From positions 3,088,849-3,152,848 of the forward strand of contig NW_003314261.1 of the NCBI RefSeq assembly GCF_000143415.4: a DNA stretch of 64,000 bases, given 5' to 3'. How positions within the stretch are numbered: position 1 is the first letter of the stretch; every line of letters begins with the position of its first letter. Under the pieces are notes generated by a model. It ran no database searches, was not told the origin of the DNA, and saw nothing but the letters and a program-made list of their open reading frames with translations. A program made the position numbers and the translations under genes. Origin of the DNA: Selaginella moellendorffii. Its lineage: Eukaryota > Plantae > Lycopodiophyta. Positions 46,213-64,000 of this stretch are shown in pieces.

Positions 46213-47585
46213 ATGAATCGCAATCCGCCGCTTTCGAGCGCCAATGGCGAGCAGGATCGCGCAAGAACGCCGGCGGCGGTGACGAGCGACAATATTTCGG
46301 ACGAGATCCGCGAGTCTGTCAATGGCGGCGATGGCGGCGGCTACTCGTCCTTCTCTCCCTCGGATCCAAACGAGCTCCTCCTCCGCCAGGGCCCCCGCCA
46401 CGCGCCGCTCACTCCCCTCCGGATCGTCCGCGGCCTGGCGTGCCTCCTCGTCCTCCTCTCCACCGCCTTCTTCATGCTCATCTTCCTGGCCCCATTCTGC
46501 TGCGTCCTCGTCCGGATCTTCAGCCGCCACCACAGCCGCGAGCTCGTCGCCTTCTTCTTCGGCCACTGGCTCGCAATGTGGCCCTTCCTCTTCGAGAACA
46601 TCAACGAGACGAGGGTGGTCTTCTCGGGCGATCGCGTCCCGGGCGGCGAGAGGGCGATCGTGATTTGCAACCACAGGACGGAGGTGGATTGGATGTACAT
46701 CTGGAACCTGGCGCTGCGCAAGGGCCGGATTGGGCACGTCAAGTACGTGGTCAAGAACAGCGTCCGCGATCTCCCCGTGTTTGGCTGGGCGCTCTACGTG
46801 ATGGAGTTTCTCCTCATCGAGAGGAAGTGGGAGGTGGACGAGCCCCTCATGGAGCGCTATCTCTCGAGCTTCAAGGACGCCAGGGATCCTCTCTGGTTGA
46901 TCCTCTTCCCGGAAGGAACTGACTACACGTAAGTTCTTCTCTCCTGTGTTTTCCTTCTTTGTTTCGAGTAACGTTTTGATCGATCGACACGCGCAGGGAG
47001 CAGAAGAAGCTGGCTGGCCAGGAACTCGCCGAGAAGAAAGGCTTGCGCAAGCTCAATCACGTACTCATGCCAAAGACCAAAGGATTCCAATCGTGCATGA
47101 AGAACCTTGGCAGCTCTCTCGACGCAGGCAAGCATCATCCATCCAAAAACTTTGGCTTTAAAGTTTAACTTCTTTCTTCTTTTTTTCCAGTCTACGATCT
47201 CACGATCGGCTACAAGAACCGCTGCCCTCTCTTCATCGACAACCTGTTTGGAATCGATCCATCCGAAGTCCACATTCACATCCGGCGCATACCCGTGGAG
47301 CAAATCCCCTCCGATGGAAACGGGTGCTCGTCGTGGCTGTACAAGGCGTACGAGCGCAAGGACGAGCTCCTCAGCTCCTTCATCAAGAAGGGTTACTTCT
47401 CTCCCGGAGGAAGCATCGAGGACAAGCTCCCGACGAGCAAGTCCCTGGCAAACTTCACCGGAGTAGCGGCGTTCACGCTCGTCCTAGGATACCTCGTCGC
47501 CTCCTTCCTCTGGATGAAGCTCTACATCGGCCTCAGCTGCCTCTACTTCGCAATCGTGAGCCACTTTGGCTGGAGACCGGCTTGA
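46213..47585 (+). CDS. 1-acyl-sn-glycerol-3-phosphate acyltransferase, LPAT4/5-type
   Basis: NHRTEVDWMY (HX4D), FPEGTD, VLMPKTKGF, AVYDLTIGY and C-terminal TMs; two introns. Confidence 0.93.
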
Positions 47586-47696
47586 GGGGAGGTCGTTCTT
47601 TCCTTCTTCGCTTAGTTTCCTCGGTTCTCCTTTTTTTCCTACTTCGGTATCCTCGTTTCTCTTTTTTCTCCTCCTCTTTGTAAATGTGTACCTCGT

Positions 47697-50450
47697 TTAA
47701 TACCACGACGCCTCCTTGAGAGCGATTGCCGAGACAGTTTGTTGCTGTGTGAGCTCGTCTTTGGGCCTTTTGGTGAACTGTTTCGTTCCCAGGTAAGTCT
47801 CGAGCCGGTTAAGCACGGAGCGAGCATCCGGATCGTTGTGCTTCTGGAGCAGTGGAACGAATCTTGTCACGATGGTGTTCATCAGCTTCATGAAAGGCTT
47901 TGGATACGACTGGTAGAGCCGGAATCCTGCAGTCTACACCAAAAGAAAGAAATAAAGTAAAGACTTGTGGCACAAAAAGCAGTCAACCTCGAGAAAAGCA
48001 AACAAAGCGGACGCGCTGTAGCGATTTGCGGGAAGATGGTTGAGGAGTTGCGCGCACCATTTCCATCCATTTGCAATGCCGTGCCCGTTTGTTCCTCCTG
48101 TCTGCGTGATGGCGGCATATAGAGTTACGTACGCAGTCATCCGTGCAACGTAATCATCTGCCGTCTCCAGAGTGCCAGAATCGTCCTCGCGAAATCCCAG
48201 CATGTTGTAATAGCTCTTGTCACTCTCGTAATCACCCTGACAATTCTCATCCGTTAGTACCAGGGGAAAAAGAAGCTAGAGAAAGTTACCTTCTTGTACA
48301 TGAAGTACTTTGGAACAGTCAAAATACACACCACATTCAGATGCGCAAGAACAGCGTCCATGACAACCGGAAGCTACCAAGAAGAAGAAATCAAGTCCAG
48401 TTTCGATAACATCGGTATGGATTACTTACCTGACTTGACACGTTAACGACGATTCGAGCGAACACAAAGGCATATGACGGGGCCCTTAAGACCTGCGCCT
48501 CACACTGAGACATAAGCTGCCAGCAAAAGATTCGACCGCGTCAGGCTGTGAAACTCGAGATATCATGTGTAAAACCTTCGACGCTAGTGTTGAAACGACA
48601 AAAGGCTGGCTTTGAGGATTGTTCGCCAGCTGCAAAAACTCCATTGACACCTTTCTTCAAGAACAAAAACAAAACAAAAAAGCATTACGACGATCAAACT
48701 ACAGTTGTTTTTGTACCTCACTTGCTCCTCTGTAGCGGCAACTTGATTCCACAGTTTACCTATTTGAAATCCCAAAGCCTTGAGGTTCTGGGGAAAAACA
48801 TCCATTTGCTCATCATCCAAAAAACAGAAGAGAAAAAGCAACTCTACCTTCCTCAACACAGGATTCGCCTGCAATGACTTTGAAGCTTCATTTAGTTGTT
48901 GGAGTATCTTCTTTCTTCCCATCTCATTGTCCGCTGCAGATTTTGAGACTCTTAGTTGAGGCGCTCCTCGCGACGGTTTCGCGCTTTCGTTCTCCTTTCG
49001 GTCTGCCTCAGCTTTCTGGGCAGCCTCGGCTTGCCGTTTCTTTTCAGCTTCGGCTGCCACTTGTTCCTCCAGTTTTCTTATTCGCTGTGCTTCAGCCGCC
49101 TTAGCTGCTGCAATCTTTAAACCCCTCGTCAGTGTGCGCCTAAAGCTAAAACCCTGAAAAGAATACCTCTGCGTCAGCCTTCGCTTTCTGTTGCCGTTCC
49201 ATTTCTTCTCGAACGGAGTGTTCTCTTCTCTGTGCCTCCTCGTCTTTTTTAATTTTCCGCTCTTCAACTTGAGAACGTTGTTCATGGTCACGCTGCAATG
49301 CTGATAGGTGCTTATCACGCTGCTCGGCACTGCCAAACCGCATTTCAATATCCGTTCAGAAAAATAAACAAGAGAAGGCACACACACATTAAGCGCTGGT
49401 ACTGCTTATCACTTCGACGAGTCATCTCGCATTTCGCCTCCTCGTCTTTCATAACTTGTGCAATTTTTTCAGCTGACCGTTGTGTCTCCTCCAAAAGAGC
49501 GGATTCTAATTGAAACCTCTTTTGTCTCAATTCCTCCTAAGATCACGTTTAACACCAATTAGAGAAGAGTGTAAACCAACCTGGACTCGAAGAATTCTCA
49601 ATCGCTCAGCTTCAAAAAGAGCTGCTTCTACTTTGCTTGTAGTTAAGAAGATGGCGTCTTCGTCATATGGAGATTTATGCGTTAGAACCCTGTCGAACGC
49701 TGTGAATTTTTGCCTTAAACCAAGAGAAGAAAAGTAAATCTCGCAACCAACCTTGAAGAGTTGTGGACAACAGGAGCTTGTCTATCACGTCCCGGATCAT
49801 TTTGACTGAACACGTCCTCCTCCTCATCATCGTCATCGTCATCCGAGCTCTCAAAGTCTTCATCATCGAGCCGCATGACGAAAGGTTTGCTGATCCTGTT
49901 AAAGTCGGCTACTTCTTCGCTCAGCCCCCAGCTACAGACAATGCACACAATCTATGATCACCAACACAACGCTCATTCACGAATACTAAAGACATGATCC
50001 ATACCGTTGCTGAGGAACGCTTTCACTTTCTCGCAAGTCCCCCTCCTCGCGAAGCCGCGACCCGCTCATCTTCTCCGTCAGTTCCTCCAGCTCGTCCCTG
50101 AGATCGCCCAGCGTCCAGTCGGGCTGCGGATCAACCATACCCAGCAGCGCATCCCGGCCTCTCCCGGACGCTGCGAGCTTCGCCACATCCTTCGGCACAA
50201 GCCTTGCTAGAGAATGCGGCGACAGCCCCTTGGAAGGAGACTCGTCGGGATCCACATTCTGGGAACAATCGTCGCTGCCAGCGGTCGCAGCTCGCGTACC
50301 TCTCTCCTCGGACAGGGCCACATTGGTGAAGAGCGGCGCCAAAACCCTGGGCCGCAATGGCGATTCCGGGCGCATTAGCGATTCCACCATCGCCGCTGGA
50401 GATCCAGACTTGCGCCTCCTCATCGGTTCCAGAAGCGGGCTCCCGCTCAT
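47697..50450 (-). CDS. GLE1: GLE1 mRNA export factor
   Basis: DPQPDWTLGDL N-terminal motif, coiled-coil middle, and GLE1 domain (ECVYFDCSKVLH region, LGFREDD..LETADDYVARMTAYVTLYAAITQT, HGIANGWKWCAQLLNHLPANRYSASALFAFLE). Confidence 0.87.
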
Positions 50451-50454
50451 TGCT

Positions 50455-50590
50455 TCCTGCCCTAAAGTAAGAACCCTAAACTCCCAACTTTAAACCCTTA
50501 AAAACATTCTTCTGATAGCCCTAATTTCGAACTTTACACCTTTTAAAATTACATTGTTACATTAGCCCTAACCCTAAAAACAGGGTTTCC
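50455..50590. promoter_or_regulatory. Telo-box cluster upstream of GLE1
   Basis: AACCCTAAA near 50472, AAACCCTT near 50492, CCCTAACCCTAAA near 50566 and AGGGTTT near 50582. Confidence 0.5.
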
Positions 50591-51259
50591 TTCTGTGGGA
50601 GATAATGGTGACAAGTAACATGGATTCTGAGTGTCAAGACAAATGCCAGCCCAAAGTGAAGAATTCCCACGCGCTACCCCCCGTGCTTCTAGCAGCGAGA
50701 CGATGCCGAGATTATTCCAAAAGATCCTCTGGGTGATCGCCTTTGTCCCCATCCTCCTTTGATTAATACATTGATCTTTACAAAGGAGAGAAAAGAAAAA
50801 TCTATAGTACCATTCGCTTGGCACGGCTGACAGCCACCACAGGAAATTTGAGGCCCGACATCGCGGAGAATATTCCCATCGGTGGGGGAATCTACGGCTG
50901 CGGTGGCCCGTCACCCGTCAATGCGCTATTCGTCTCATTTTCTTTGTTTCTCCCTCCATTTTTTCTCGCGGCCAGAGCTAGGGCAGATCGAGCGATCAGT
51001 CGGTGCGCGTGGATGCGGTGGCGCGAGGGATCTCTGCCAGCAGCGCCGTCGCGCGCGTGAGGGAATTCGAGGTTTTAGGTTGCTTCTCATGAGCGCCGGC
51101 GGATGATCGGAAAGAGGGGGAAGTGGGCGATTCACGTCTCCCATTTTCCTCCGGCGCTTGGGATTTGTGTCGCTTATGGCAGGAGATGTAGTGCATTCTT
51201 GCCTAGCACTAGACAAGTTTTCGATTCCAGCAGCTGACTGACAAGGGTCTGGCGAAAAA

Positions 51260-53484
51260 ATGCCAGGAAACATACGTGTTGCTGGTGATTATTTCTTCTT
51301 CTTTGTTCTTTGAAAGAATCAGCTCGAGTGATTTATTGTTTTCGTGGCTTGCAGTTTTGGAAGCGATCGACTTGCCTTCCACTGTCACAGGTAATTGATT
51401 CGTCCAGCTTTCCTCCACCGATTTCTTATGGTGTTCTATATTTTCATAAACAGATGGGAAGTCTGTCGCTGTGAAAGGTCCGATGTTCCTCACTTCATCG
51501 TTTCTTCGTTCTCACTTCTCACCATTTGTTTGTTTACTCCTCATTATTTAGTTTCTGTTGGAAGGCGAGAGTTTCAAACATCGTCTGTAGAGCCACAAGA
51601 TGGTCGAACGCAGCCTTGGAACTTGGAGTATCTGTTGTACGTGTTTTCATTCGAGTGGCTCACTTCTCTCTTTAACATACTTCGTGATTTTTTCTAGTCC
51701 TGTGCTTAATCTCCGGGACAACCTTCTGGTTTCTTTATTGGATAGCAAAGGAGATGTCGTTGCTAGAGCTGGTAAGCTTTGGAGAGTGGGAACGAAGTTT
51801 TGCTAACTCTTGCTTCTTTCTAGAACTCGAGACGCCTGGAATTGTACAGAAAGGCTTTCAGGATTCGTTCATTGCTTTAAAAGCCGGTGGTCGCATACAC
51901 GTAAAAGTCAGCTTCGTGCTATCGGAGGAGGAGCGAAGAAAAATCGAAGCAATGGTATACAAACAGATCTGTGGTAACTTCCATAACTTGTTCATCTGCA
52001 GAGATTGGCAGCCACGAAGAAACGGAAAGGACTCGGTCAGTCGTTCAAGTCTCGCCGAGCACCTGTCTCTAACGTTAAGATCACTGAAATCAGTTCCGAG
52101 GAGGCCGAAAACTTGGATACTGTTCCACAAGAGATTTCCAAAGCGGGTACTCGCAGTGGTCTGCCCGACGACGAAGATGCTTCTGGCCGTGGAACGGAAA
52201 AGGTTGAGGAATTATCACGGAAACATTCTGGTCCAAAACCCGAGCTGGCAACTACCTTGAAGCCGGATCTTCCTCCTAAACATTGCGATGTAACAGCTCC
52301 CACTGCTACTGACACTGCAACTCCAGCATCAAATCCCGCTGCGGCTGAGGCTAATTCTGATAGTAGCAGGCGCAAGGTATCGTTTCTCTGTTTCTTTTGA
52401 ATCTCACTCAGAACTTTATCGCAGAATTTCAACTGGCTGTCTAGAAGACAACACGAGAACAGGGCAGAGTCTGGTGTGGAGAAAGCTGAAGATAGTAAGT
52501 GGCTGGAGGACTTGAAGCTGAAGAGTAAGATCGACAAATCTACGTCTGCCAAAGCAGCTAAAGCAGACGAGTGGATAAAAAATCTAGACCGATCGAGTGA
52601 GAAGGCCGGATCCTGTAAACAGGAAGGCTTGAGATCGAAGACGCACTCGCAAGAGGAAGGGAAGTTTCGCGATCAAGTGAAACACTCGCAGAAAACAGTC
52701 AAACAGAAGCTTGAGGATTGGCGAGCCAAGGAGCTGGGACCTTGGAGGCGTACCTCCAAGGTCAGGCATGCAAGTCCTCCGGGATCAGAGCATGGTACAA
52801 GGTGGTCACTAAAACACGGGAGGAAGCACAGAATTGAGAGAGAACTTTCGGCGGCTCAACATCCAGAACTGATGGCTGCAACGGACAAACCCCTGGAACA
52901 AGAGGTTGGAAAAGAAATTCTCTTTGAGTGTTGACGTGATTTCGCATTGTTTGAAGAGTTCGAGCTCGGGCAGTTCCTCTCCTTCATCTTCTCCGGCAAA
53001 CCATAGGAAGGTGTCCGGGGGTGTAAAGAACTTCGTGAAGCAGGTGTATCAATTTTTCTCACTTCTTCCCATCTTATGCGCTGGTCCCTCGCAGGTCCTG
53101 AGTGGAGCAGCTGTTGTAGCTGGTGCCATCGTTGTGTGGCCAAGGTAGTCGTATTTTTATATAAATCCAAAGTATAACATTTTCCTGCTTTGTCCCGTGT
53201 AGAAGAGGATCCTCCAAAATCAAAGAAAGGTATACTCTACATGTTTGGCCTTTCTACGCAGCGATAACTGACTCAAAGCCCGCAGGTATCACATTGTGCA
53301 AAAGGGAGAAACTTTGAGCAGCATCGTTCCCGATGAATGGGAGGACCCCGACTCCAATTTCTATCGTCTGAATCCTCAGGTAAGGCTTGTAAAACTCGTG
53401 GAAGTCCCGGACTGAGCTTCAGGTTTGTGACAGATTCGCGACAAACATGTTATCTATCCCGGTCAACGAATCCGGCTAAGCTAG
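51260..53484 (+). CDS. C2-like N-terminal domain, disordered linker, TM and C-terminal LysM domain
   Basis: About 13 GT-AG exons: MPGNIRVA|VLEAIDLP...VSVGRREFQT...FPVLNLRDNLLVSL...GGRIHVKVSFVLSEEERRKIEAM; TM VLSGAAVVAGAIVVW; LysM YHIVQKGETLSSI...FYRLNPQ|IRDKHVIYPGQRIRLS*. Confidence 0.82.
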
Positions 53485-53814
53485 AAGCGAGCTAGAGTTC
53501 TGCGTGCTGCGTTATCGGCTGTCGGTAACGTCTAGAAAGGTTGTTGGTTTGTTGCTCTTGACCTTCCAGTGAGGAGGAAGGTGGAGGCTCTCTGACGGTA
53601 AATTCGTGTAAAATAATTTCCCACTTCTCGCCCGCTTTCTCGCTTTCCAGTCGCTTCTTTATGACTCATTCTTTCGTTAGTGCGCGACAGTGGTGCCCGC
53701 TTCTGACTGGTGAGTCCACCTTTGATTTTCTTCTGCTTTTTATAGACGTTTCTAAAGCCTTGGTTTTTTCATGCTTTCAGGAGAGCGGCAGTCCAGATCG
53801 AAGTCCTCGAGAGA

Positions 53815-54309
53815 ATGGAGGTGCTCCAAGCGGCAGTGCTTGGCCTCTCGATCTTCTTGCTAGCTCAGTGGGGGTATGCCGCGCCTTCCAGAATGCAGTT
53901 CTATATGCACGACAACTTCAATCTCTCGCCGAGGACGGTGCTCCGGGTCGCGGGCTCCGCGAACTCTACAGCCGCATTTGGAGCGGTGATGGTGATCGAC
54001 GATCTGCTCACCGAGGGCCCCTCGCCCGCGTCGCAGCCGGTTGGAAGAGCGCAGGGGACTTACATGATCAGCGCGCTGGACGGCTCCAGCTTGCTCCTGA
54101 CGTTCACGGCGGTGTTTAGCCGCGGGAGTGAGAATGGCAGCACCATAAGCTTTCATGGCGCGGACAGGTTCCTGCTAGCGGAGCGCGAGATCGCGGTGAT
54201 CGGAGGCACTGGAAAGTTTCGAATGGCTCGAGGATTTGCAGTACTCAACACGACATCGAACACCAACAGAGCCACAATCGTGGGCTTCGATGTTACTCTC
54301 CAAGTTTGA
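53815..54309 (+). CDS. Dirigent protein
   Basis: Signal peptide, FYMHD, FGAVMVIDDLLTEGP, VGRAQGTY, REIAVIGGTGKFRMARGFA. Confidence 0.95.
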   Translation: MEVLQAAVLGLSIFLLAQWGYAAPSRMQFYMHDNFNLSPRTVLRVAGSANSTAAFGAVMVIDDLLTEGPSPASQPVGRAQGTYMISALDGSSLLLTFTAVFSRGSENGSTISFHGADRFLLAEREIAVIGGTGKFRMARGFAVLNTTSNTNRATIVGFDVTLQV

Positions 54310-54366
54310 TCGCTACCGTTAAAATGTTTTAAATTCTAGCATATTCTACAGGTTGCAATTCTTTAG

Positions 54367-55872
54367 ATGCGCGATAGTGACGAGGCTCTAGCCATTCGAT
54401 CGTGTAGGAGTGTGAGCGAGCTCCAGGACGCGCAATCCCGCCTCGTCTTGCGCCATGGCAATCGCGTCTTCCTTTGCAATCTCCTCGTCCAGATGTATGG
54501 GCGATTCGGCGCCATCGCCAACGCGCGCCTCGTCTTTGATCGCCTCATCCCGGACGAAGCCAAGAACGCCTTCTCCTGGGCGTCGATCATCTCCGCCTAC
54601 ACCGGCGCCGGTGATCTGGAGGGCGCACGGCACCTCTTCCAGGCCATGCCCGCTCGCGATCTCGTCGCATGGAACGCCCTCCTCACGGCGTACACGCAGC
54701 GCCAAGGCGAGATCAGCACCGCGCGGGACGTTTTCCATTCCATCCCCGAGTGGAATGGCGTCTCCTCCACGACAATGCTGGCGGCATTGGCGCGCGAGGG
54801 GATGGTGAGCGAGGCCCGGGAGATTTACGAGAAGGACATGGAAGAACACGACCTCGTCTCCGCCACTGCGATGCTCAACGTCTATGCCAGAGCCGGGCAT
54901 TTGCGGGACACTCAAAGTTTCTTCGAATCCATGCCCCAGCACAATCTCATCTCCTTTACAACAGTGCTACACGCAATGGCAGAAAATCGAAAACTGGAAG
55001 ACAGCATTAAAGTATTTGATCGAGCTCCAGAGCTTGACATTTTCTGCTGGACGGCCATAGTTTCTGCAAATGCCGTTGAAGGGCATTTGGACCATGCCTG
55101 GAGTCTCTACCATGCCATGCCCTGTTGGAGCCAAGTGACGTGGAATGCCATGCTGGCTGGGCTCTGCCGATGTGGCCAGGCCAGTGCCGCTAAAGCGTTT
55201 CTGGATGGCCTGCCTGAATGGGACACGGTGTCCTGCCTCGTCACCATCACCGGGCTTGCCGCGTCTGGGCATGTGCAGCAGGCCTGCCAGCTCTTCAATG
55301 ACGTGGCGGAGAGGGACGTAGTGTGCTGGAATGCCATGCTGTCGGCATACTGCAGGCATTGCCACCTGGAGCGGGCTCGGGCTTTCTTGGCGATGATGTG
55401 GCAGCGCGACACTGTGTCGTGGAACGCCATGGTGGCAGCCCATGCGCGTAAAGGCCAGGTGGAGGCATCTAGGCAGCTCTTGCAAGACATGGCCATGGAG
55501 GGTGTAAGCCCCGACGAGACCACCTTCACCAACATGCTCATTGGATTTAGCTACGCGGGAGATGCTAGCCTGAGCTACTGGTGCTTTGGATCCATGGTTG
55601 TGGATCACCATCTACAACCAAGTAAACAGCACTACTCTTGCCTCCTGGATGCCATCGCTAGAGCTGGAGATGTAGCGGCTGCTGAGAGTGTGATCAAGGG
55701 CATGCCATCGGAGCCACAGCCTGTAGACTGGCTGTGCCTGCTGGGAAGCTCGATGAGTCAGATCAACCAGATCCACAGCGGGGCTCGAGCAGCCCAACAC
55801 GCTCTCACTCTGGATCCTCTCAACGAAATCACATACCTCCACCTAGCAAATGCGTGCCATCGATGGCCTTGA
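54367..55872 (+). CDS. PLS-class PPR protein with E domain, no DYW (RNA-editing specificity factor type)
   Basis: Short tandem repeats (RDLVAWNALL, RDVVCWNAML, RDTVSWNAMV) and E-region HYSCLLDAIARAG...MPSEP..VDWLCLLG...LDP...YLHLAN. Confidence 0.93.
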   Translation: MRDSDEALAIRSCRSVSELQDAQSRLVLRHGNRVFLCNLLVQMYGRFGAIANARLVFDRLIPDEAKNAFSWASIISAYTGAGDLEGARHLFQAMPARDLVAWNALLTAYTQRQGEISTARDVFHSIPEWNGVSSTTMLAALAREGMVSEAREIYEKDMEEHDLVSATAMLNVYARAGHLRDTQSFFESMPQHNLISFTTVLHAMAENRKLEDSIKVFDRAPELDIFCWTAIVSANAVEGHLDHAWSLYHAMPCWSQVTWNAMLAGLCRCGQASAAKAFLDGLPEWDTVSCLVTITGLAASGHVQQACQLFNDVAERDVVCWNAMLSAYCRHCHLERARAFLAMMWQRDTVSWNAMVAAHARKGQVEASRQLLQDMAMEGVSPDETTFTNMLIGFSYAGDASLSYWCFGSMVVDHHLQPSKQHYSCLLDAIARAGDVAAAESVIKGMPSEPQPVDWLCLLGSSMSQINQIHSGARAAQHALTLDPLNEITYLHLANACHRWP

Positions 55873-55989
55873 TTATTTGTTGAAGTTTCTAAAGAGGATG
55901 GATATTCTCTTCTTTATGCTTTTAAGATGTGATTTTTAATTAAATAAATCATAACTATAAGATTGGTCAAGTCCAAATTCCGCTTCCAG

Positions 55990-57760
55990 GAGATTGAATC
56001 CATCGCGAAGATCATGACGCCTTCCCAGGTGCTTGATCAAAAGAATCACTGACTCATCTTCTGCAATGCAGACCAATAAGGTATCACTCCCTCACCCTGT
56101 GAATTTCGGGCCAAAGCCTCCGTCAACCACAACACAAGATTTCTTCCCGGGATCATGCTCGTCCACGACCTCTCCGGCATCTCCGCATTGGCCATTGGCC
56201 ATTCACTTGTGGTGCCCAATGTCTCGATTGTCTGGGCAACTTGGCAGGTGCGCAGTAATTTCCAGCGAGCAGAGAGAGAGACAACAACAAAACAATGAGA
56301 GGATTCAGAGGAACACGACTGTGCTACACAATATCATCGAGCATTATCTTGAGCCTAGGCTTTGCCTCCTCCATGGCATGGTTCTATGAGTGCAACAACA
56401 ATCTTGAACTTTCATTGTGATGTTTATTAAAGCTTGGTGATGTTTAGTTTTTGCGGTCAGAGGTCGACCTTTTGGAGCGGAGATTTCTGTCGTGGACTGC
56501 AAGCTCGCAAAAGTTGCAAGAAAATTTACGTCCTTGGCCTGTTGAGTTGATTGTGAGGTATATGCAGTCTATATGGCGGCCACGCTCTACTTGCAGTCGA
56601 TGTGCCCCACGGCAATAGGTAGCCAGGGTCGTCCTCACCCAGGGTGCGACGCAGCCTAACCTGTGGGGTTGAATAGATGTCATATTTAGTGGCACCGCTA
56701 GCCATTGGTGCAACGCTTGATGCATTCATGTTGAGTAGTCATCGAGTGGGTCGGAGACCACCAGTTCCAGATCCAGGCCTTGTTCGGTCCATGCTTTGAG
56801 TTCATGCCACCATCCTCCCTTTCGTTCATATATGAATCTTCCATCGCTCAAGAGGCTAGCTTTTCCCGAGGGTCCCTGCGCAATGCCTTCACCAGAGCAA
56901 TAGTTCGTTTCCATGCCAGGATCTCTAGTGGAAGCAAACAGCTTTCCAGTACCATGATGGTGTAGGCATGTAGCTCTTGGATGTTCAAGTCCTATCCCGT
57001 ATGTAGCATGGGAGCCCCGACTCAGTGGCGTACAATGCCACCAAGACCACCACAGCCATATAGAAAGATCGCTTTGCCTTAGAATTGGTTATGGCATTGT
57101 TGTGACAGTCAGATTGGAGGCTGTAATAACCCAGTTGTGCAGCTTTAATGCCCTGCGTCCATGCGCGCTGCTGATGCTGTATAGCCGAGGTACATGTATT
57201 CGATGGTTTCCACCACAGATTCCCCGTTGTAGAGGCATTCACGAGATGATGGATTGCCAAATATCATGACTTGCGTCTTGGACGCATACCCGCTGGTATG
57301 CAGAATCGTGCCAACATGTCAAAGCAGGCAATAGCAGACCCATCATTGAAGGTACTGTTCCCCCAGCAAACATCTAGGGTATAGTTTCAATGAGGAGATT
57401 GCGAGGCACCAAGTCAAATACCTGGGCAAAATCCACAAACCACAATATGAAGACTTTGCTGTGGCCTAGCCTGATTCATAAGCAGGTGGTCCAGGCACGA
57501 GTGATGTCTCTGAAAACCTGCTTCGAGATTTGAATTTCCTCCGCCCATACCCGGGCAAGGATTTTTGTGAATATGCTAGACACAGTGATAATTGGTCCCC
57601 TGTTCATGTACATGCACAACCCTGTTGATCATCCATAACTCCGGCAAACTGGTGGTCCAGAGACGGTTGACAATCGGCGTGAGTGCAGCTGCCACCCATG
57701 CTGTGTTTGTTGCCCACAAGAGCTCTACCGTCATCCCTCTCTTTGTTCGCTGGAAGCCTG
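55990..57760 (-). pseudogene. Degenerate PPR fragments
   Basis: Minus-strand fragments such as NGQCGDA, EMPERSWTSMI and FAQVFDLVPRNL in broken frames. Confidence 0.45.
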
Positions 57761-59349
57761 TACTACTTTTCATCTCATAAACTCAAAAAGTCAATGACAG
57801 TTAATTAAAGTCAATGAACGTTTTTGAAGATGGCTTAAAATGAGCTCAACTCAAATTTTGGACAGCCCCGTTAGCTTGGAGGGATTTTATCTCAGTCTGC
57901 TCTTGTGTGAATTCTAGAATCGTGTTCTCCACATTTAGCTTATTGTAGAGCTTGGCTTCGATCTTGCAGGTGAACAATTGGTCATGGTCTCTTAAAGATC
58001 TTATATGCCTAGTGGGGTCACTCCGTGCAAATTGGTGATTGTGCTTTTGAAAGACAGGGATGCCTTAGCTTCTTCTTCTTCTTCTTCTTATGTATGCCCA
58101 GGCACAATTGTCATCCCACGAACTTCTAGAAGTAGTGGCACTTTTTTGTTCTTCTTGCTCATTCTTTCTCCCTTTTCCAGAACTATAGTTAATGCTGATT
58201 TGGCATTGTCCTGGATTTGACGCCATTGCCATGGGTGGAACCATTGAAGTGCCAACACTAGCAGGATCAGTCATGTTGAGGGTAGGCTATACTTTTCAAG
58301 GACATGGATTTTGATCTTGGTTTTACGAACAGGTCAAGCTTGGTACTCAACCGGGTCAGAAACAAGTGATGCAAGACAATTTGAGAGTTTAGTTTCTCTG
58401 TCTTCCGAGTTACGCAATGACATACTTATGGCAATCAATACATGCACTTCCATGTAAACATATAAGTTTTTGTTCTATTGTTCTTGCGAGTGCTCTGTGA
58501 TCTTGTGTTGATCACTCACTTTCTCTTGATTCTCCAGAACCATGAGTGATAGCTAGTTGGCAACTTCTAGAGGAATTTGCGAGAGAAGAATCTAACAAAT
58601 ACGAGAATGCTTAGCTTCTGATTCACAAAAGGTATATAATTAATTTATAGGTTCTTTCTTCTCTTTGATTTTGCTTGCTCTAGTCTCTTGGGCTGTGATG
58701 AGCAAACAAATCACCGAGAAGGACAAGCAAACCTTTGCTAAATGGCTGCTCACTTGCGCTCTGATGCTCTCTTCTTTTTTTTCTTGTCCTTCCTTCCATA
58801 GCTACTTCTTTGTTTAACCTTTGTCGTGTTTGTGACTTTGGCAGCTTTTTGTATGGCTACAGATCAAAGATCGCACGCTTCCAATTCTCCTAGACCAAGC
58901 AAGGTACATTTCGTCCTCTTCTTCTCTTTTTTCCAGCTTTTCATCATGCTTGCTTCTTTGTCTGATCCACAGCCTCCACTAGAAGTGTGATCTTGACCAA
59001 GATTTACTACGCTTGTCAAAAGGCTATGTTTTATAGGAACTTGGAGCTCGACAATAACGCTAACATACTGGGATAACCCTTGCATGGCTGACACTAGTCC
59101 ACTTACAGACAACTCCCTCTCCAAAGGTATCCAATCCTTAAGCTGCTTTGCGTGGAAATGTAAGAAAGTCTTGCTTTTGTTTCAAGGCCGGAAAATCAGT
59201 TATCATTTTTACTATTCATGACCATCAACAGGAATGCAGATAGCTTTCTAAGTGTGCTGGATTGGTTTTCACTAATTTCTTTATTTGCAGATGCTGAGGA
59301 GACTCGTGCAAAACTGAGAAGTAGCTCTGACTCTGATAGAGTACTAAAA

Positions 59350-62300
59350 GATTTTAATATGAAACTAACAACTGAAATAAAAGATAAAGAATTTTTTTTT
59401 CTATTTTTTCTTTTTAATTTTTTAACAATTTATATCACTTTTAGATTTATTTTTATAAGAAATAATAATTTATGGATTAAATATAAATATAAATATAATT
59501 ACATAATTATTATCTTATGGTTGATATTTAAGCTTTAAAAACTTTATCCTATAAGTTTTCTAACCAAATTATTCATTCTATAATTTAAGGATGTGAAATA
59601 ATACATTTTTCTTAATTTTAGTTAATTCAGTTTACACATATTTAGGTATTATACTAATTAACAAAAATGGATTGACTAAATTTAGTCTTAAAAGGATGGG
59701 TGTAAACCTTAATTAATATACTCGCATTGGTGGCATTGAAATTTGTTCCTAAAGGGTAAATATTTTGGCAGTGCTTTATTATAGCATTTGGGACTTATGT
59801 TATTATTTTTAATCCTTTATATTCTTTTAAATCTAGATCTGTATTAGCGTTTTGTAAAATTTAAAATTTTAGCTATCAATATGCTTAAATTTGCTCTCCC
59901 TTTAATGTTCATTGCTTTTTTTTAATGAAAAACTTATGTTATTGGTTTGCATTTGCTAGTGTTGAGAACCCCCACAATATTGAGTTTGATCTTTCAATAC
60001 TCATTGCATAATACCTAATATATATATATACCAAGATAAATTAAAGATTTCGTAAGATAGGTATCAATCCTTTAATTTGTTATTTGATATTTTATCTTTA
60101 CGATTTGCTCTTCCCAACCTTTTCTTATTTTTTTAGCTTATACCACCTTTTTATATTTATAGTGAGGTTACATGCTGTGAAATTAAGAATTTTACTTTTG
60201 TTTTTTTGACAAAGTTTTTGATCAATTATAATGTTAAGTATTTCTTTGTTCCAAGGGTTGAGTCATTTTTGTAAAACTTTTAGATTTGGTGTGTATTCTT
60301 GATTATAAGTCCCATTGAAAGCCTTTATTTTACCATTACTACTGAGGAGTTTATATATTCTCTTGAGAGTATATACTTTTCAATTAAATTTCATATTTAA
60401 ACTATTGAGTTGTGTATTGAGGAGGTTGAGTAGTGTGAATCTTATACTTATATAATGGTAACCGAAGTATTTTATAACAAGAGATCCCTTTTTTTTTAAG
60501 CTTGGTAAAAATTCTTCTTTTATTGTTTATTTTTCCATTTTTTTTCACAATGTTTCTTCCTTAATTTTTCTTTCTTTCTCCTTTTTATCTTAACGTTCCA
60601 ATTTTTTTTCTGTGGAAGAGGGGGTTAAAGGGGATGGTAAAGTGTTTAACCCCAAAAATAGAGTGAGGACAAGTGATTAAAATATAATATAAAAATCACA
60701 TTAACTAATTCATCAATCAAGCAATACCATAAACAACATTAATATCAGCACTTGAAAATTACATGAGTATCAAGTGCCAATTTTATTTGATAAAATACAA
60801 CATAAATACCCCACTTTATTAAAAGAGATTTACAACACCTAGCACTATATACTTCATTCACAATATAGACAAACTCATATTACTCTTTTTCTTACTAAAC
60901 TGAAAACTAATTAAATACTAAGCTACTTAAAGAGTAAGGTCTTTGAAAAAGAATTAATTATTGTAACTCAAGCGTTTCAATAGTAAAACTTTATCACTAT
61001 CTATCATATGACTCACCATTTGTATAATTGTTATAACTAACATGCATCATTACAAATCATATTTTTAAGAAAAGAAGATGATTTATATATTTGACCCTTT
61101 GTCTTTGATAACTCTTTTTTCAATTTTAACTCACTTAAATCTCAAGCTTGCACTTGCACTTTCTTCAGTTTAATATAAGAAAAATGTATGAGAGAGCATA
61201 GCGATGATTAATTGAACCAATAGACTAAACTCTAGATTCTTTATTAATCCACTCACAATCGTGCTTAATTAGAATCCATTAGTGTTGTGTTAAAAAATTA
61301 CAGATTAGCTTATTCACCATTCATAATAAATCTATGAGAGATTTACTTTTACCCATAGTAATATAGAATAACTCATGGTAACCACCTATAAGCTAATATT
61401 AATCCTTCCAACTCAAAATTTAACCTTAAGTTGTTAATATGTCTCATTTATAAACCAAACACAAACTCATGCAAATTGTGTATAAAAAAAATCCATCCTA
61501 TATTGTTCAGTGGGATTAAGTTTTAAAACTTGAGTTCCACTCCACTACCCTTGACCCACATATTTAAAGGTTAAAATTTTATTATCCTATGGTAAGTCAC
61601 TATAATTAAAGAGTGAAATTATGTGTGCTATATTTGGTTTACAAAAATGTATTTTAGCATGTACTATCCAATGAGAGTGGACAATTAGTCTTATTGCATA
61701 CACAAAAATAAAAATAGTGATCCAAATAAGTCCATATTTGGGTATTATAGATTTACATGCATCCCTAGGTATAGATTTTGATATATATATTTTTGTATTA
61801 TATTGTGTGAGCTTTCTAGGGATAAAGCCAAAATCCTAATCATACAACCTAAGGAGTGAAAATATAGAAGCATAGAGTGACATTGAAACAATTTTAAAAT
61901 ATTGAACATTTGCAAGTTATATATTTTTCCTTTTCAATTTGTCAACTTTCCTCATCTATCCTACCACTACTACCTTGGCCTTAGTTATGTTCCATTGTCA
62001 AGGTTCCCACTTATTGTACCAACTTCTACTTAGTCTTACTTGGATTCAATTACTTATTGCATACAAACCCTAAGCACACAAGATGTGATTCTCATTATAT
62101 GCTACTTCCCCTTAGATAAGAGGACAAAATGTTAACCATCCATCCACAGATTCTTAAATTCCTTCTTAATCCACCTTTCTGGGTTAGATTAGACTTGAAG
62201 TTCAATTACACTCCCTACAAGCACAAATAGCTAAGCACACCAAACTAACATCCTTTTGTTGATCATAAGACCTCTAAATCCTAGCCATGCATCCATTATA

Positions 62301-64000
62301 TAGGTGTCCATATCAAACTATTACACTATAGTGTTTCCCCTTGAGGTCCCAAAGTAAAAGATACACCTAAAGTTTACACTTCCATCCCAAAAGGATGGCT
62401 CAAGCCCCTAAGTAAGAGTGAAGACTAATAAGTTGTATAGTACTCAAGTGAGGCATCATTCCACATGAGCCAAGAGTATTACAGTTGGTTTCCTTTCCAA
62501 GAGTGGGAGTTGCTCTTGATCACTTCTTTAGGTAACTTCTTTGGCATCACCTAAGTCCATGCTCACTCCCACCCAAAGCCTCTAACCCCTAGTCCCAACT
62601 TTAAGTCAGTTTAGAAGTACTAGTAGAAAGTTCCTTCAAGACTAATTCCTAGAATTCACTATCTTTACTATACTTTTGGAACCCTTGCAGTACCCCCACT
62701 CTAGAGACAATCATGTTAGGCTTTCACCCCATGACCTATATTAGTATTTGAATTTGGTCTTAGACTCGATCGTGGATTCAACCTCGGACTCGATCTCGGA
62801 CCCAGGCTCAGACCTGGTCTTGGACCCGATCTTGGATCTCAGACTGCATCTTGAACTCCATCTTGGAGTTGGTGTCGGACTCAATTTATTTGATGAACTC
62901 TTTATTGTTCTGGTTATAATTTTGGGATCCTTTAGCCTATGACACCTCAGAGAATTTGATTCCTTACAACATCATAATGCCATAACTATTATGCAAAATG
63001 GAGTCAATTAAAGTCTAATAGTGGTTTAATATAAAAATATAAATACTCTACCAAAAGCTTGGACTTAAACCTAAAACAAATGTAAAATAAAGATAGGCAT
63101 ACCTAGTTAAGATAATATCTTATATTAATTGGCTATGTCCAATTTACCCACTATTCTTAGAATACATTTAGAACACCCCCCCTCGCCCCCTCCCCCTCTT
63201 TATATGAAAACACACTTTGGGCTTTCACCCTAGTCCCAAAAGCTAGTTTTTGGGATAATTATGAAAACTTACTAAATATGAAATTGCACTAGATTGTGAA
63301 TTTGGATGTGGGAATAATATTAGAACAATTTTTACATTCCATAGATATGCCTCACTAATAGATTTAGACACTTTCTATAAATGATCAAATCAAATAGGAC
63401 TAACATATAAGGCATGATAACAAAGGTGTTTTGGCAAAGATAGTAAGATATTATGTAGTGGTATTAAAAGACTAGAGCTTAATATATAAGGGTTCTTGTC
63501 AAGATAATTCAAGACAAAGCAAAAGAGAACTAAAGCTAGTTTAAGTATGTTCAACAAAAAACAAGAGTTTCTACCTTATATTTATTTAACTAAGTATAGA
63601 TTTTAAACTCAATTTACTAATGCTTGAATAAGAGAACTATAACAGAAACTAGTAATACCAATTTTTTACCATCGTAGTAAAAAAAGAATACTTGAAAGCA
63701 CTCACTAATAGATAACTATCATTACCTACAATCACATTCATGACAATGGTAGAGTAAAGATAAGCAAAATAAGTCTGAATGAAGCTAGTGCTTCAAAATT
63801 TTTTTTCCTTTGAGGAGGGGATAAAAAGCATATAAAATATGAATAGAGTGAATTTGACTTTTTATATGCAATGCAAGATAAAAATGAAGGTTTTGAGTAC
63901 AAGTTAACATGGGTCTTCAAGGTTGACTAAAGAAAGACACAAAAGTGGGTTCTACTAATAATTATGAGTTTGAGTTAATAACTATCTTATAGGATGGCTA
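59350..64000. mobile_element. AT-rich, CpG-depleted degenerate transposon/repeat region
   Basis: Sharp GC drop and almost no ORFs. A polypurine tract on the minus strand (63176-63200) directly followed by TGTT suggests an LTR boundary. Confidence 0.4.

Follow-up and report, generated by a model that had tools for sequence, protein, structure and literature searches.

Within a 64,000-nucleotide stretch of nuclear DNA from the lycophyte Selaginella moellendorffii (contig NW_003314261.1, positions 3,088,849 to 3,152,848; hereafter the window), we analyzed the plus-strand gene at positions 51260-53484, LOC112345562. In our reading, to which we assign a probability of about 0.6, this gene codes for the S. 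moellendorffii member of a MIN1-type family of proteins containing a C2 domain, a transmembrane (TM) segment and a LysM domain, with the hydrophobic segment spanning a membrane and the LysM on its far side. The C2-TM-LysM design of the Chlamydomonas eyespot protein MIN1 would then persist in a vascular plant. The family is known and little studied; its lycophyte member was overlooked by a survey of LysM proteins published in 2009 and carries the label 'uncharacterized' in RefSeq. It provides a land-plant handle on the role of the family outside the eyespot, which is likely the bridging of membranes or compartments at the plastid envelope or the plasma membrane. An initial annotation, made from the sequence alone, had proposed that the protein may tether cytosolic membranes or the cytoskeleton to peptidoglycan in the chloroplast envelope, or else sense chitin without a kinase. 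For such a tether, the placement of a LysM across a membrane in a plant with peptidoglycan does not count as evidence; the inference is weak, since an alga that lacks the peptidoglycan pathway has retained the LysM of the same family.

Gene model and domain architecture

Joining 13 exons generated an open reading frame (ORF) of 1539 nt running from the ATG at 51260 to the TAG at 53482-53484, with introns of 47-74 nt that are all of the GT-AG type. The deduced protein of 512 amino acids (aa) has exactly the sequence of the RefSeq entry XP_024528382.1, annotated as "uncharacterized protein LOC112345562 isoform X2", which bears out the gene model of the initial annotation. A HMMER search of 1.84 billion representative proteins, carried out with exon 8 alone (the longest one, 160 aa), gave a single strong match, the same 512-aa XP_024528382.1, in which exon 8 corresponds to residues 251-410; no relatives of this linker exon were found in that collection. 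The other match (E = 1.3e-5) was to a protein of 379 aa in which a unit of about 80 aa is repeated in tandem, and it seems to reflect chance similarity between low-complexity sequences. On the minus strand, the two longest ORFs overlapping the gene had no match to a Pfam family.

The protein consists of an N-terminal C2 domain, a linker of about 310 aa, one hydrophobic segment and a C-terminal LysM domain. This order had already been proposed, and it was confirmed by Pfam, a Kyte-Doolittle scan and structure prediction. The N-terminal 125 residues scored 17.5 bits against Pfam C2, below the cut-off of 22, and their closest sequence match in the PDB, using phmmer, was a C2 domain of MCTP2 (E = 0.006). 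Single-sequence AlphaFold prediction of this region yielded an eight-strand sandwich, with a predicted local distance difference test score (pLDDT) of 68 and a predicted template modelling score (pTM) of 0.63. When this model was compared with the PDB by Foldseek, all of the top 50 matches were C2 domains, with probability 1.00 and TM-scores of about 0.6-0.7. The description of the N-terminus as "C2-like" was therefore correct in spite of the Pfam score. The domain sits at the extreme N-terminus of the protein and its strand 1 constitutes that N-terminus, in agreement with the reported lack of a signal peptide. In comparison with the C2 domain of MCTP2, the Asp of 'SDP' is replaced by Val and the central Asp of 'DEDGD' by Lys, while three other acidic positions seem to be kept. 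Judged from these residues, classical calcium binding by the C2 domain is doubtful.

The LysM domain had been described as split over two exons (12 and 13) and invisible in single ORFs, and this was indeed the case: the two exons joined scored 29.9 bits against Pfam LysM (E = 5.5e-7; curated cut-off 20.9), versus 14.4 bits for exon 12 alone. The full-length protein scored exactly the cut-off and residues 430-512 scored 27.4 bits. Alignment with bacterial LysM repeats required one insertion of one residue and reached up to 40% identity, with the G, T, I, N and P residues kept. AlphaFold, run with the bacterial alignment, predicted a beta-alpha-alpha-beta fold (pLDDT 81-89), and in nearly all of the best Foldseek matches listed from the PDB the structure included a LysM, the weak E-values being in keeping with a length of 48 residues. 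The domain lacks cysteine, and the protein ends one residue past its last strand. A separate small LysM gene was considered and rejected: ahead of the LysM, the reading frame contains no further ATG after Met400 (exon 8), and therefore the LysM is not translatable alone. A short product starting at Met400 is conceivable, although unsupported.

Residues 126-439, the linker, are rich in Ser, Lys, Ala, Glu and Arg and have a net charge of +16, which agrees with the long charged linker of the initial annotation. No Pfam family was matched within these residues. The linker is unconserved and fast-evolving, and it is probably disordered. Comparison of haplotypes was informative in this respect. The second haplotype contains the same gene (LOC112345392), for which RefSeq annotates the same two isoforms; positions 47262-55960 of the window are collinear with the locus of the second haplotype (L001) at 97.6% identity, the gene corresponding to L001 4001-6244. 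The C2 exons (1-6) contained no substitution in 375 nt, versus 6 in 367 nt of their own introns (Fisher p = 0.014). The linker exons (7-9) showed 19 substitutions in 942 nt, a rate indistinguishable from that of introns; nine of these plus a 6-nt indel were located in exon 7, and nine plus a 3-nt indel in exon 8, both indels being in frame. The linker holds 11 of the 13 amino-acid changes between haplotypes and all three inserted residues. The two remaining changes, V453M (the one substitution of exon 10) and D487N, map to the TM and LysM exons (10-13), where 2 substitutions in 222 nt are too sparse for judging constraint. These results indicated constraint on the C2 domain but none on the linker.

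The other isoform, X1 (529 aa), differs from X2 solely by the in-frame retention of intron 9. This intron is free of stop codons, and X1 gains from it 17 mostly hydrophobic residues (VYQFFSLLPILCAGPSQ) placed directly before the hydrophobic segment, an insertion that could alter how the segment is seated in the membrane.

Relatives in Chlamydomonas, moss and spikemoss

A C2+LysM architecture was noted in Chlamydomonas and moss by Zhang et al. 2009 (BMC Evol Biol 9:183), who reported its loss in angiosperms and, in discussing it, referred to the change to a vascular life style. The Chlamydomonas protein in their tables, cr156645, is labelled c2 and flagged for a TM; it has 322 aa, with the LysM at 277-322. 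The Selaginella gene was absent from the sequence tables of that study, the supplement included. The concept put forward in the initial annotation is not new: the C2+LysM combination had been noted in 2009, and a protein with a TM and a LysM that was tied to the peptidoglycan pathway (PPASP) followed in 2016.

We compared the Selaginella protein with cr156645 by BLASTP, and two short collinear segments were aligned. Residues 1-42 matched residues 1-42 of the algal protein with 36% identity (E = 1e-5), and the hydrophobic segment, the Trp-basic motif and the LysM aligned to the last residues of cr156645 (E = 1e-5), the C-terminal ends being YPGQRIRLS in Selaginella and YPGDRLRIR in Chlamydomonas. 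Since the two matches are independent, collinear and anchored at the ends of both proteins, common ancestry of the whole architecture is the simplest reading. In papers on the Chlamydomonas eyespot, MIN1 is presented as a C2/LysM-domain protein of the eyespot proteome, and a role has been postulated for it in apposing the chloroplast envelope and the plasma membrane. From this description of MIN1, and from cr156645 being the sole Chlamydomonas entry labelled c2 in the portion of the tables seen, we infer that cr156645 is most likely the MIN1 protein of Chlamydomonas reinhardtii. MIN1 reportedly has an N-terminal C2 domain and a C-terminal LysM with a transmembrane sequence between them, and the plasma membrane and the envelope have reportedly been considered as its location.

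The protein's C-terminal portion has further relatives. SmLysMn6 from Selaginella (E = 6e-5) and PpLysMn5 from Physcomitrium (E = 5e-7) share the module formed by the TM, the basic stretch and the C-terminal LysM, and their hydrophobic runs comprise 25-26 uncharged residues. The distribution of this module suggests that it is combined with different cytosolic heads. The LysM was also 35% identical to that of AtLysMe3, a secreted angiosperm LysMe protein (E = 1e-6), so that its similarity to angiosperm LysMe equals that to the moss and spikemoss proteins.

Proposed membrane topology, location and ligand

As the initial annotation had indicated, the protein contains one hydrophobic segment followed by PRRG. 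In the Kyte-Doolittle scan, aa 440-454 (VLSGAAVVAGAIVVW) were the sole hydrophobic segment, with a mean of 2.27, the next-best window reaching 1.21. The segment is 15-16 residues long, rich in Gly and Ala and ends in Trp; it is followed by the basic stretch PRRGSSKIKER and then by the LysM. Its best 19-residue window was 1.77, the classical threshold for a membrane span being about 1.6. The 12 residues after the hydrophobic run carry a net charge of +4, as they do in SmLysMn6 and PpLysMn5. We take the segment to be membrane-spanning because its position, terminal Trp and basic cluster are kept from alga to spikemoss, and because the relatives have hydrophobic runs of 25-26 residues at this place. 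If the segment does span the membrane, the placement of the LysM on the side opposite to the C2 domain, as originally proposed, holds.

The term "tail-anchored" applied to the protein was partly appropriate: there is one putative transmembrane domain (TMD) close to the C-terminus and a presumably cytosolic N-terminal domain, but the tail is not short. Tail-anchored proteins are defined by a short hydrophilic tail and by a TMD that leaves the ribosome only after termination (the tail of OEP9 has 32 aa). In the Selaginella protein 58 residues, including the folded LysM, lie C-terminal of the segment, and a classical tail-anchored protein was rejected on this basis.

Several observations weigh against the assignment to a MIN1-type family with a membrane-spanning segment. 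The identities of the pairwise alignments are modest, at 23-36%. No homologue outside the species came from word-indexed searches with residues 1-130 and 430-512, although such searches require shared 5-residue words and are blind to relatives with 25-35% identity, having missed SmLysMn6 and cr156645 themselves. With residues 1-130, only the protein itself and isoform X1 were recovered among proteins of 282-896 aa, and nothing among those of 72-227 aa; with residues 430-512 the extra matches were only bacterial multi-LysM proteins. The equation of cr156645 with MIN1, most likely as it is, was deduced as described above. In addition, Selaginella has no eyespot, so the function of MIN1 is not directly transferable to it, and the role must differ or be more general. 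The segment itself is just 15-16 residues long and isoform X1 changes its surroundings, while the part of the protein beyond it is too long for classical tail-anchor insertion. Finally, assignment to the outer envelope rests on general targeting rules, to which the targeting review itself notes many exceptions.

The shortness of the segment could also mean that it does not cross a membrane at all. It would then serve as a monotopic anchor or, above all in X1, as a hairpin, or else form a buried helix, and both the C2 and the LysM would be cytosolic or nuclear, as in the non-secretory plant LysMn proteins or in the bacterial BON-LysM protein Kbp. Kbp is cytoplasmic, and it was among the PDB matches of the LysM. 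The hydrophobic stretch of X1, about 32 residues broken by Pro and Gly, is long enough for a hairpin, and the KKRK stretch after the C2 domain and the lack of cysteines in the LysM would fit as well. Nevertheless, the relatives have unambiguous runs of 25-26 hydrophobic residues at the same position, the arrangement of hydrophobic segment, Trp and basic residues is kept in Selaginella and Chlamydomonas, and the best 19-residue window lies above the classical threshold; we consider this explanation very unlikely.

Regarding the membrane involved, a review of tail-anchor targeting states that mitochondrial and plastid outer membranes receive TMDs that are short, less hydrophobic and followed by basic or RK/ST C-terminal elements, while the endoplasmic reticulum (ER) receives those that are long and hydrophobic and have neutral or acidic tails. 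The plastid outer envelope would be the favoured location, since the segment is short and moderately hydrophobic and is followed by the dibasic, Ser-rich stretch; the plasma membrane would be the main alternative. In the latter case the protein would be a type II protein of the plasma or secretory membrane, with an apoplastic or luminal LysM binding chitin, bacterial peptidoglycan or a wall glycan and the C2 on the inner leaflet or on an adjacent organelle, and it would act as a kinase-less sensor or as a link between wall and membrane. The 35% identity to AtLysMe3 speaks for this possibility, as do the secretion of LysMe proteins, their in vitro binding of chitin, chitosan and cellulose, and the long hydrophobic runs of SmLysMn6 and PpLysMn5. 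The plasma membrane as one of the two places reportedly considered for MIN1 would fit as well. However, the basic cluster is C-terminal of the segment and by the positive-inside rule disfavours translocation of the LysM into the ER, the Selaginella segment is short and rich in Gly and Ala, and LysMe proteins have four cysteines whereas the Selaginella LysM has none. Such a location appears unlikely.

In the reading that follows from the initial annotation, the protein would lie in the plastid outer envelope with its LysM bound to plastid peptidoglycan, tethering it to cytosolic membranes or to the cytoskeleton, and the family would track the presence of the Mur and PBP genes. The claim that lycophytes keep the Mur genes was supported for S. 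moellendorffii, which has the full pathway (MurA-G, Ddl, MraY and PBP) according to the 2016 PPASP paper. The tether is also in line with the segment and its basic flank, which match the rules for outer-membrane targeting, and with a canonical LysM closest to bacterial wall-binding LysMs; moreover, a similar proposal has been published for PPASP, and the 'NPDLIYP' form of the LysM occurs in the 2009 data set only in one moss and one spikemoss protein. On the other hand, the table of the 2016 paper lists MurA, MurB, MurC, MurD, MurF, MraY, PBP and PPASP as not found in Chlamydomonas, where the homologue of the same architecture nevertheless has an intact LysM. Because cr156645 keeps this domain, retention of the LysM does not depend on the Mur genes at the family level, and the expected co-occurrence fails, an outcome that the initial annotation itself had listed as refuting its proposal. 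A chloroplast atlas likewise reports most peptidoglycan genes to be absent in Chlamydomonas and suggests that an envelope LysM protein there binds other glycans. The LysM subtype gave no support to the peptidoglycan link either, being common also to secreted LysMe proteins that bind chitin, chitosan and cellulose (35% identity and E = 1e-6 with AtLysMe3). Furthermore, the protein is not PPASP: its TM is not N-terminal, and BLASTP gave no alignment to the LysM of SmLysMe1, a protein whose layout suggests that it is PPASP-like. Binding of peptidoglycan in Selaginella has no specific support even though the pathway is complete, and we regard the tether as improbable. What stood of the proposal is a link from the cytosol to the chloroplast envelope, which would parallel the role postulated for MIN1; its peptidoglycan partner did not.

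Returning to a MIN1-type protein, the C2 domain and the linker would be in the cytosol and the LysM across the membrane, in the intermembrane space if the protein is in the plastid outer envelope. The ligand of the LysM would be a glycan of the N-acetylglucosamine (GlcNAc) type or a glycoprotein, not necessarily peptidoglycan. By analogy with the hypothesis for MIN1, the protein could bridge two compartments: the LysM would hold the glycan or glycoprotein, and the long linker would let the C2 domain reach another membrane and bind its surface opposite. This binding would probably occur without a classical calcium site, since two of the usual acidic loop residues are missing. A variant of this mechanism is that a MIN1-type protein was co-opted in those streptophytes that retained plastid peptidoglycan, the LysM gripping peptidoglycan from the outer envelope while the linker and the C2 domain reach a cytosolic membrane. 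We consider co-option decidedly unlikely; if true, it would represent the first physical link between the cytosol and the plastid wall and would serve in dividing or positioning the plastid.

Genomic context and comparison with known systems

The features of the gene are collected in Table 1.

Table 1. Exons of the C2-LysM gene and the intron retained in isoform X1 (positions in the window).
Feature	Position	Strand	Content
Exon 1	51260..51284	+	Start codon and C2 strand 1, aa 1-8; Met1 pairs with Met1 of cr156645
Exon 2	51355..51390	+	C2, aa 9-20; no substitution between haplotypes
Exon 3	51454..51477	+	C2, aa 21-28; spliced model equals RefSeq protein
Exon 4	51552..51636	+	C2, aa 29-56; spliced model equals RefSeq protein
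Exon 5	51698..51771	+	C2, aa 57-81; spliced model equals RefSeq protein
Exon 6	51824..51954	+	End of C2 and subsequent helix, aa 82-125
Exon 7	52002..52376	+	Linker part 1, aa 126-250; KKRK stretch close to its start
Exon 8	52425..52904	+	Linker part 2, aa 251-410; rich in Lys, Ser and Glu
Exon 9	52957..53043	+	Ser-rich stretch plus a basic region that immediately precedes the membrane segment, aa 411-439
Intron 9	53044..53094	+	51 nt; retained in frame in isoform X1, adding VYQFFSLLPILCAGPSQ
Exon 10	53095..53144	+	Hydrophobic segment VLSGAAVVAGAIVVW (aa 440-454), then PR
Exon 11	53203..53229	+	27-nt micro-exon; finishes the basic stretch PRRGSSKIKER
Exon 12	53286..53379	+	LysM, first two thirds (YHIVQKGETL...NPQ)
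Exon 13	53434..53484	+	LysM, last third (IRDKHVIYPGQRIRLS), and TAG stop

Upstream of the gene, a GLE1-family gene is located on the minus strand at about 47700-50870 (Pfam PF07817, matched by the protein from the other haplotype); it diverges from the C2-LysM gene, with about 390 bp between them, and the end of an acyltransferase gene lies at about 47262-47585. Downstream, an intron-less dirigent gene (53815-54309, plus strand; Pfam Dirigent, 154 bits) starts 330 bp past the C2-LysM stop codon. It is followed by a pentatricopeptide-repeat ORF of 501 aa (54367-55872, plus strand), the exact product of which was absent from the protein collection searched; the gene called at this place in the other haplotype codes for 418 aa, so the annotation and the plain ORF disagree in start or structure. 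Collinearity between haplotypes ends at 55960; beyond that point it returns for just 93 bp (57387-57478), which suggests that an insertion or rearrangement specific to one haplotype lies at 55960-57387. Positions 58001-64000 are AT-rich, with a G+C content of 0.27-0.35 versus 0.45-0.56 in the rest of the window.

Two known groups of plant LysM proteins were considered for the Selaginella protein and rejected. Plant LysMe proteins share with it the LysM subtype and a hydrophobic segment directly before a C-terminal LysM. They differ in having a signal peptide, a size of about 100-120 aa and four cysteines, with two predicted disulfide bonds, whereas the Selaginella protein has about 440 residues upstream of the segment and a cysteine-free LysM; membership was rejected on its 512 aa, its N-terminal C2 and the lack of cysteine in the LysM. 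PPASP is a bi-domain protein with a conserved N-terminal TM, an almost wholly hydrophobic stretch of 21 aa, and a C-terminal LysM (2016 PPASP paper). It resembles the Selaginella protein in its one TM, its C-terminal LysM, the lack of a transit peptide and, as a functional idea, the proposed location in the outer chloroplast membrane with a LysM that would contact GlcNAc. However, PPASP is presumably small, whereas in the Selaginella protein the TM begins at residue 440 of 512, behind the C2 and the linker, and the PPASPs of Selaginella are other genes (JGI 438100 and 438219); membership was therefore also discarded. The reported occurrence of PPASP is restricted to embryophytes in which the peptidoglycan pathway is complete or nearly so. 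PPASP thus tracks that pathway, which the C2-TM-LysM family does not.

SmLysMn6 and PpLysMn5 are alike in having a long N-terminal region, one TM, the basic stretch and a C-terminal LysM of the same subtype. They differ at the N-terminus, which in SmLysMn6 resembles by eye a calponin-homology domain and in the 2009 model of PpLysMn5 seems unreliable. The closest correspondence was with Chlamydomonas cr156645 (most likely MIN1), in which the C2 domain also starts at residue 1 and is followed by a low-complexity linker, the hydrophobic segment with Trp and basic residues and, as the very last part, a single LysM. The algal protein is shorter (322 versus 512 aa) and its linker is rich in Ala and Pro, while that of Selaginella is basic, Ser-rich and about twice as long. 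The C2+LysM architecture, known from Chlamydomonas and moss in Zhang et al. 2009, thus has in the Selaginella gene a counterpart of the same architecture in a vascular plant.

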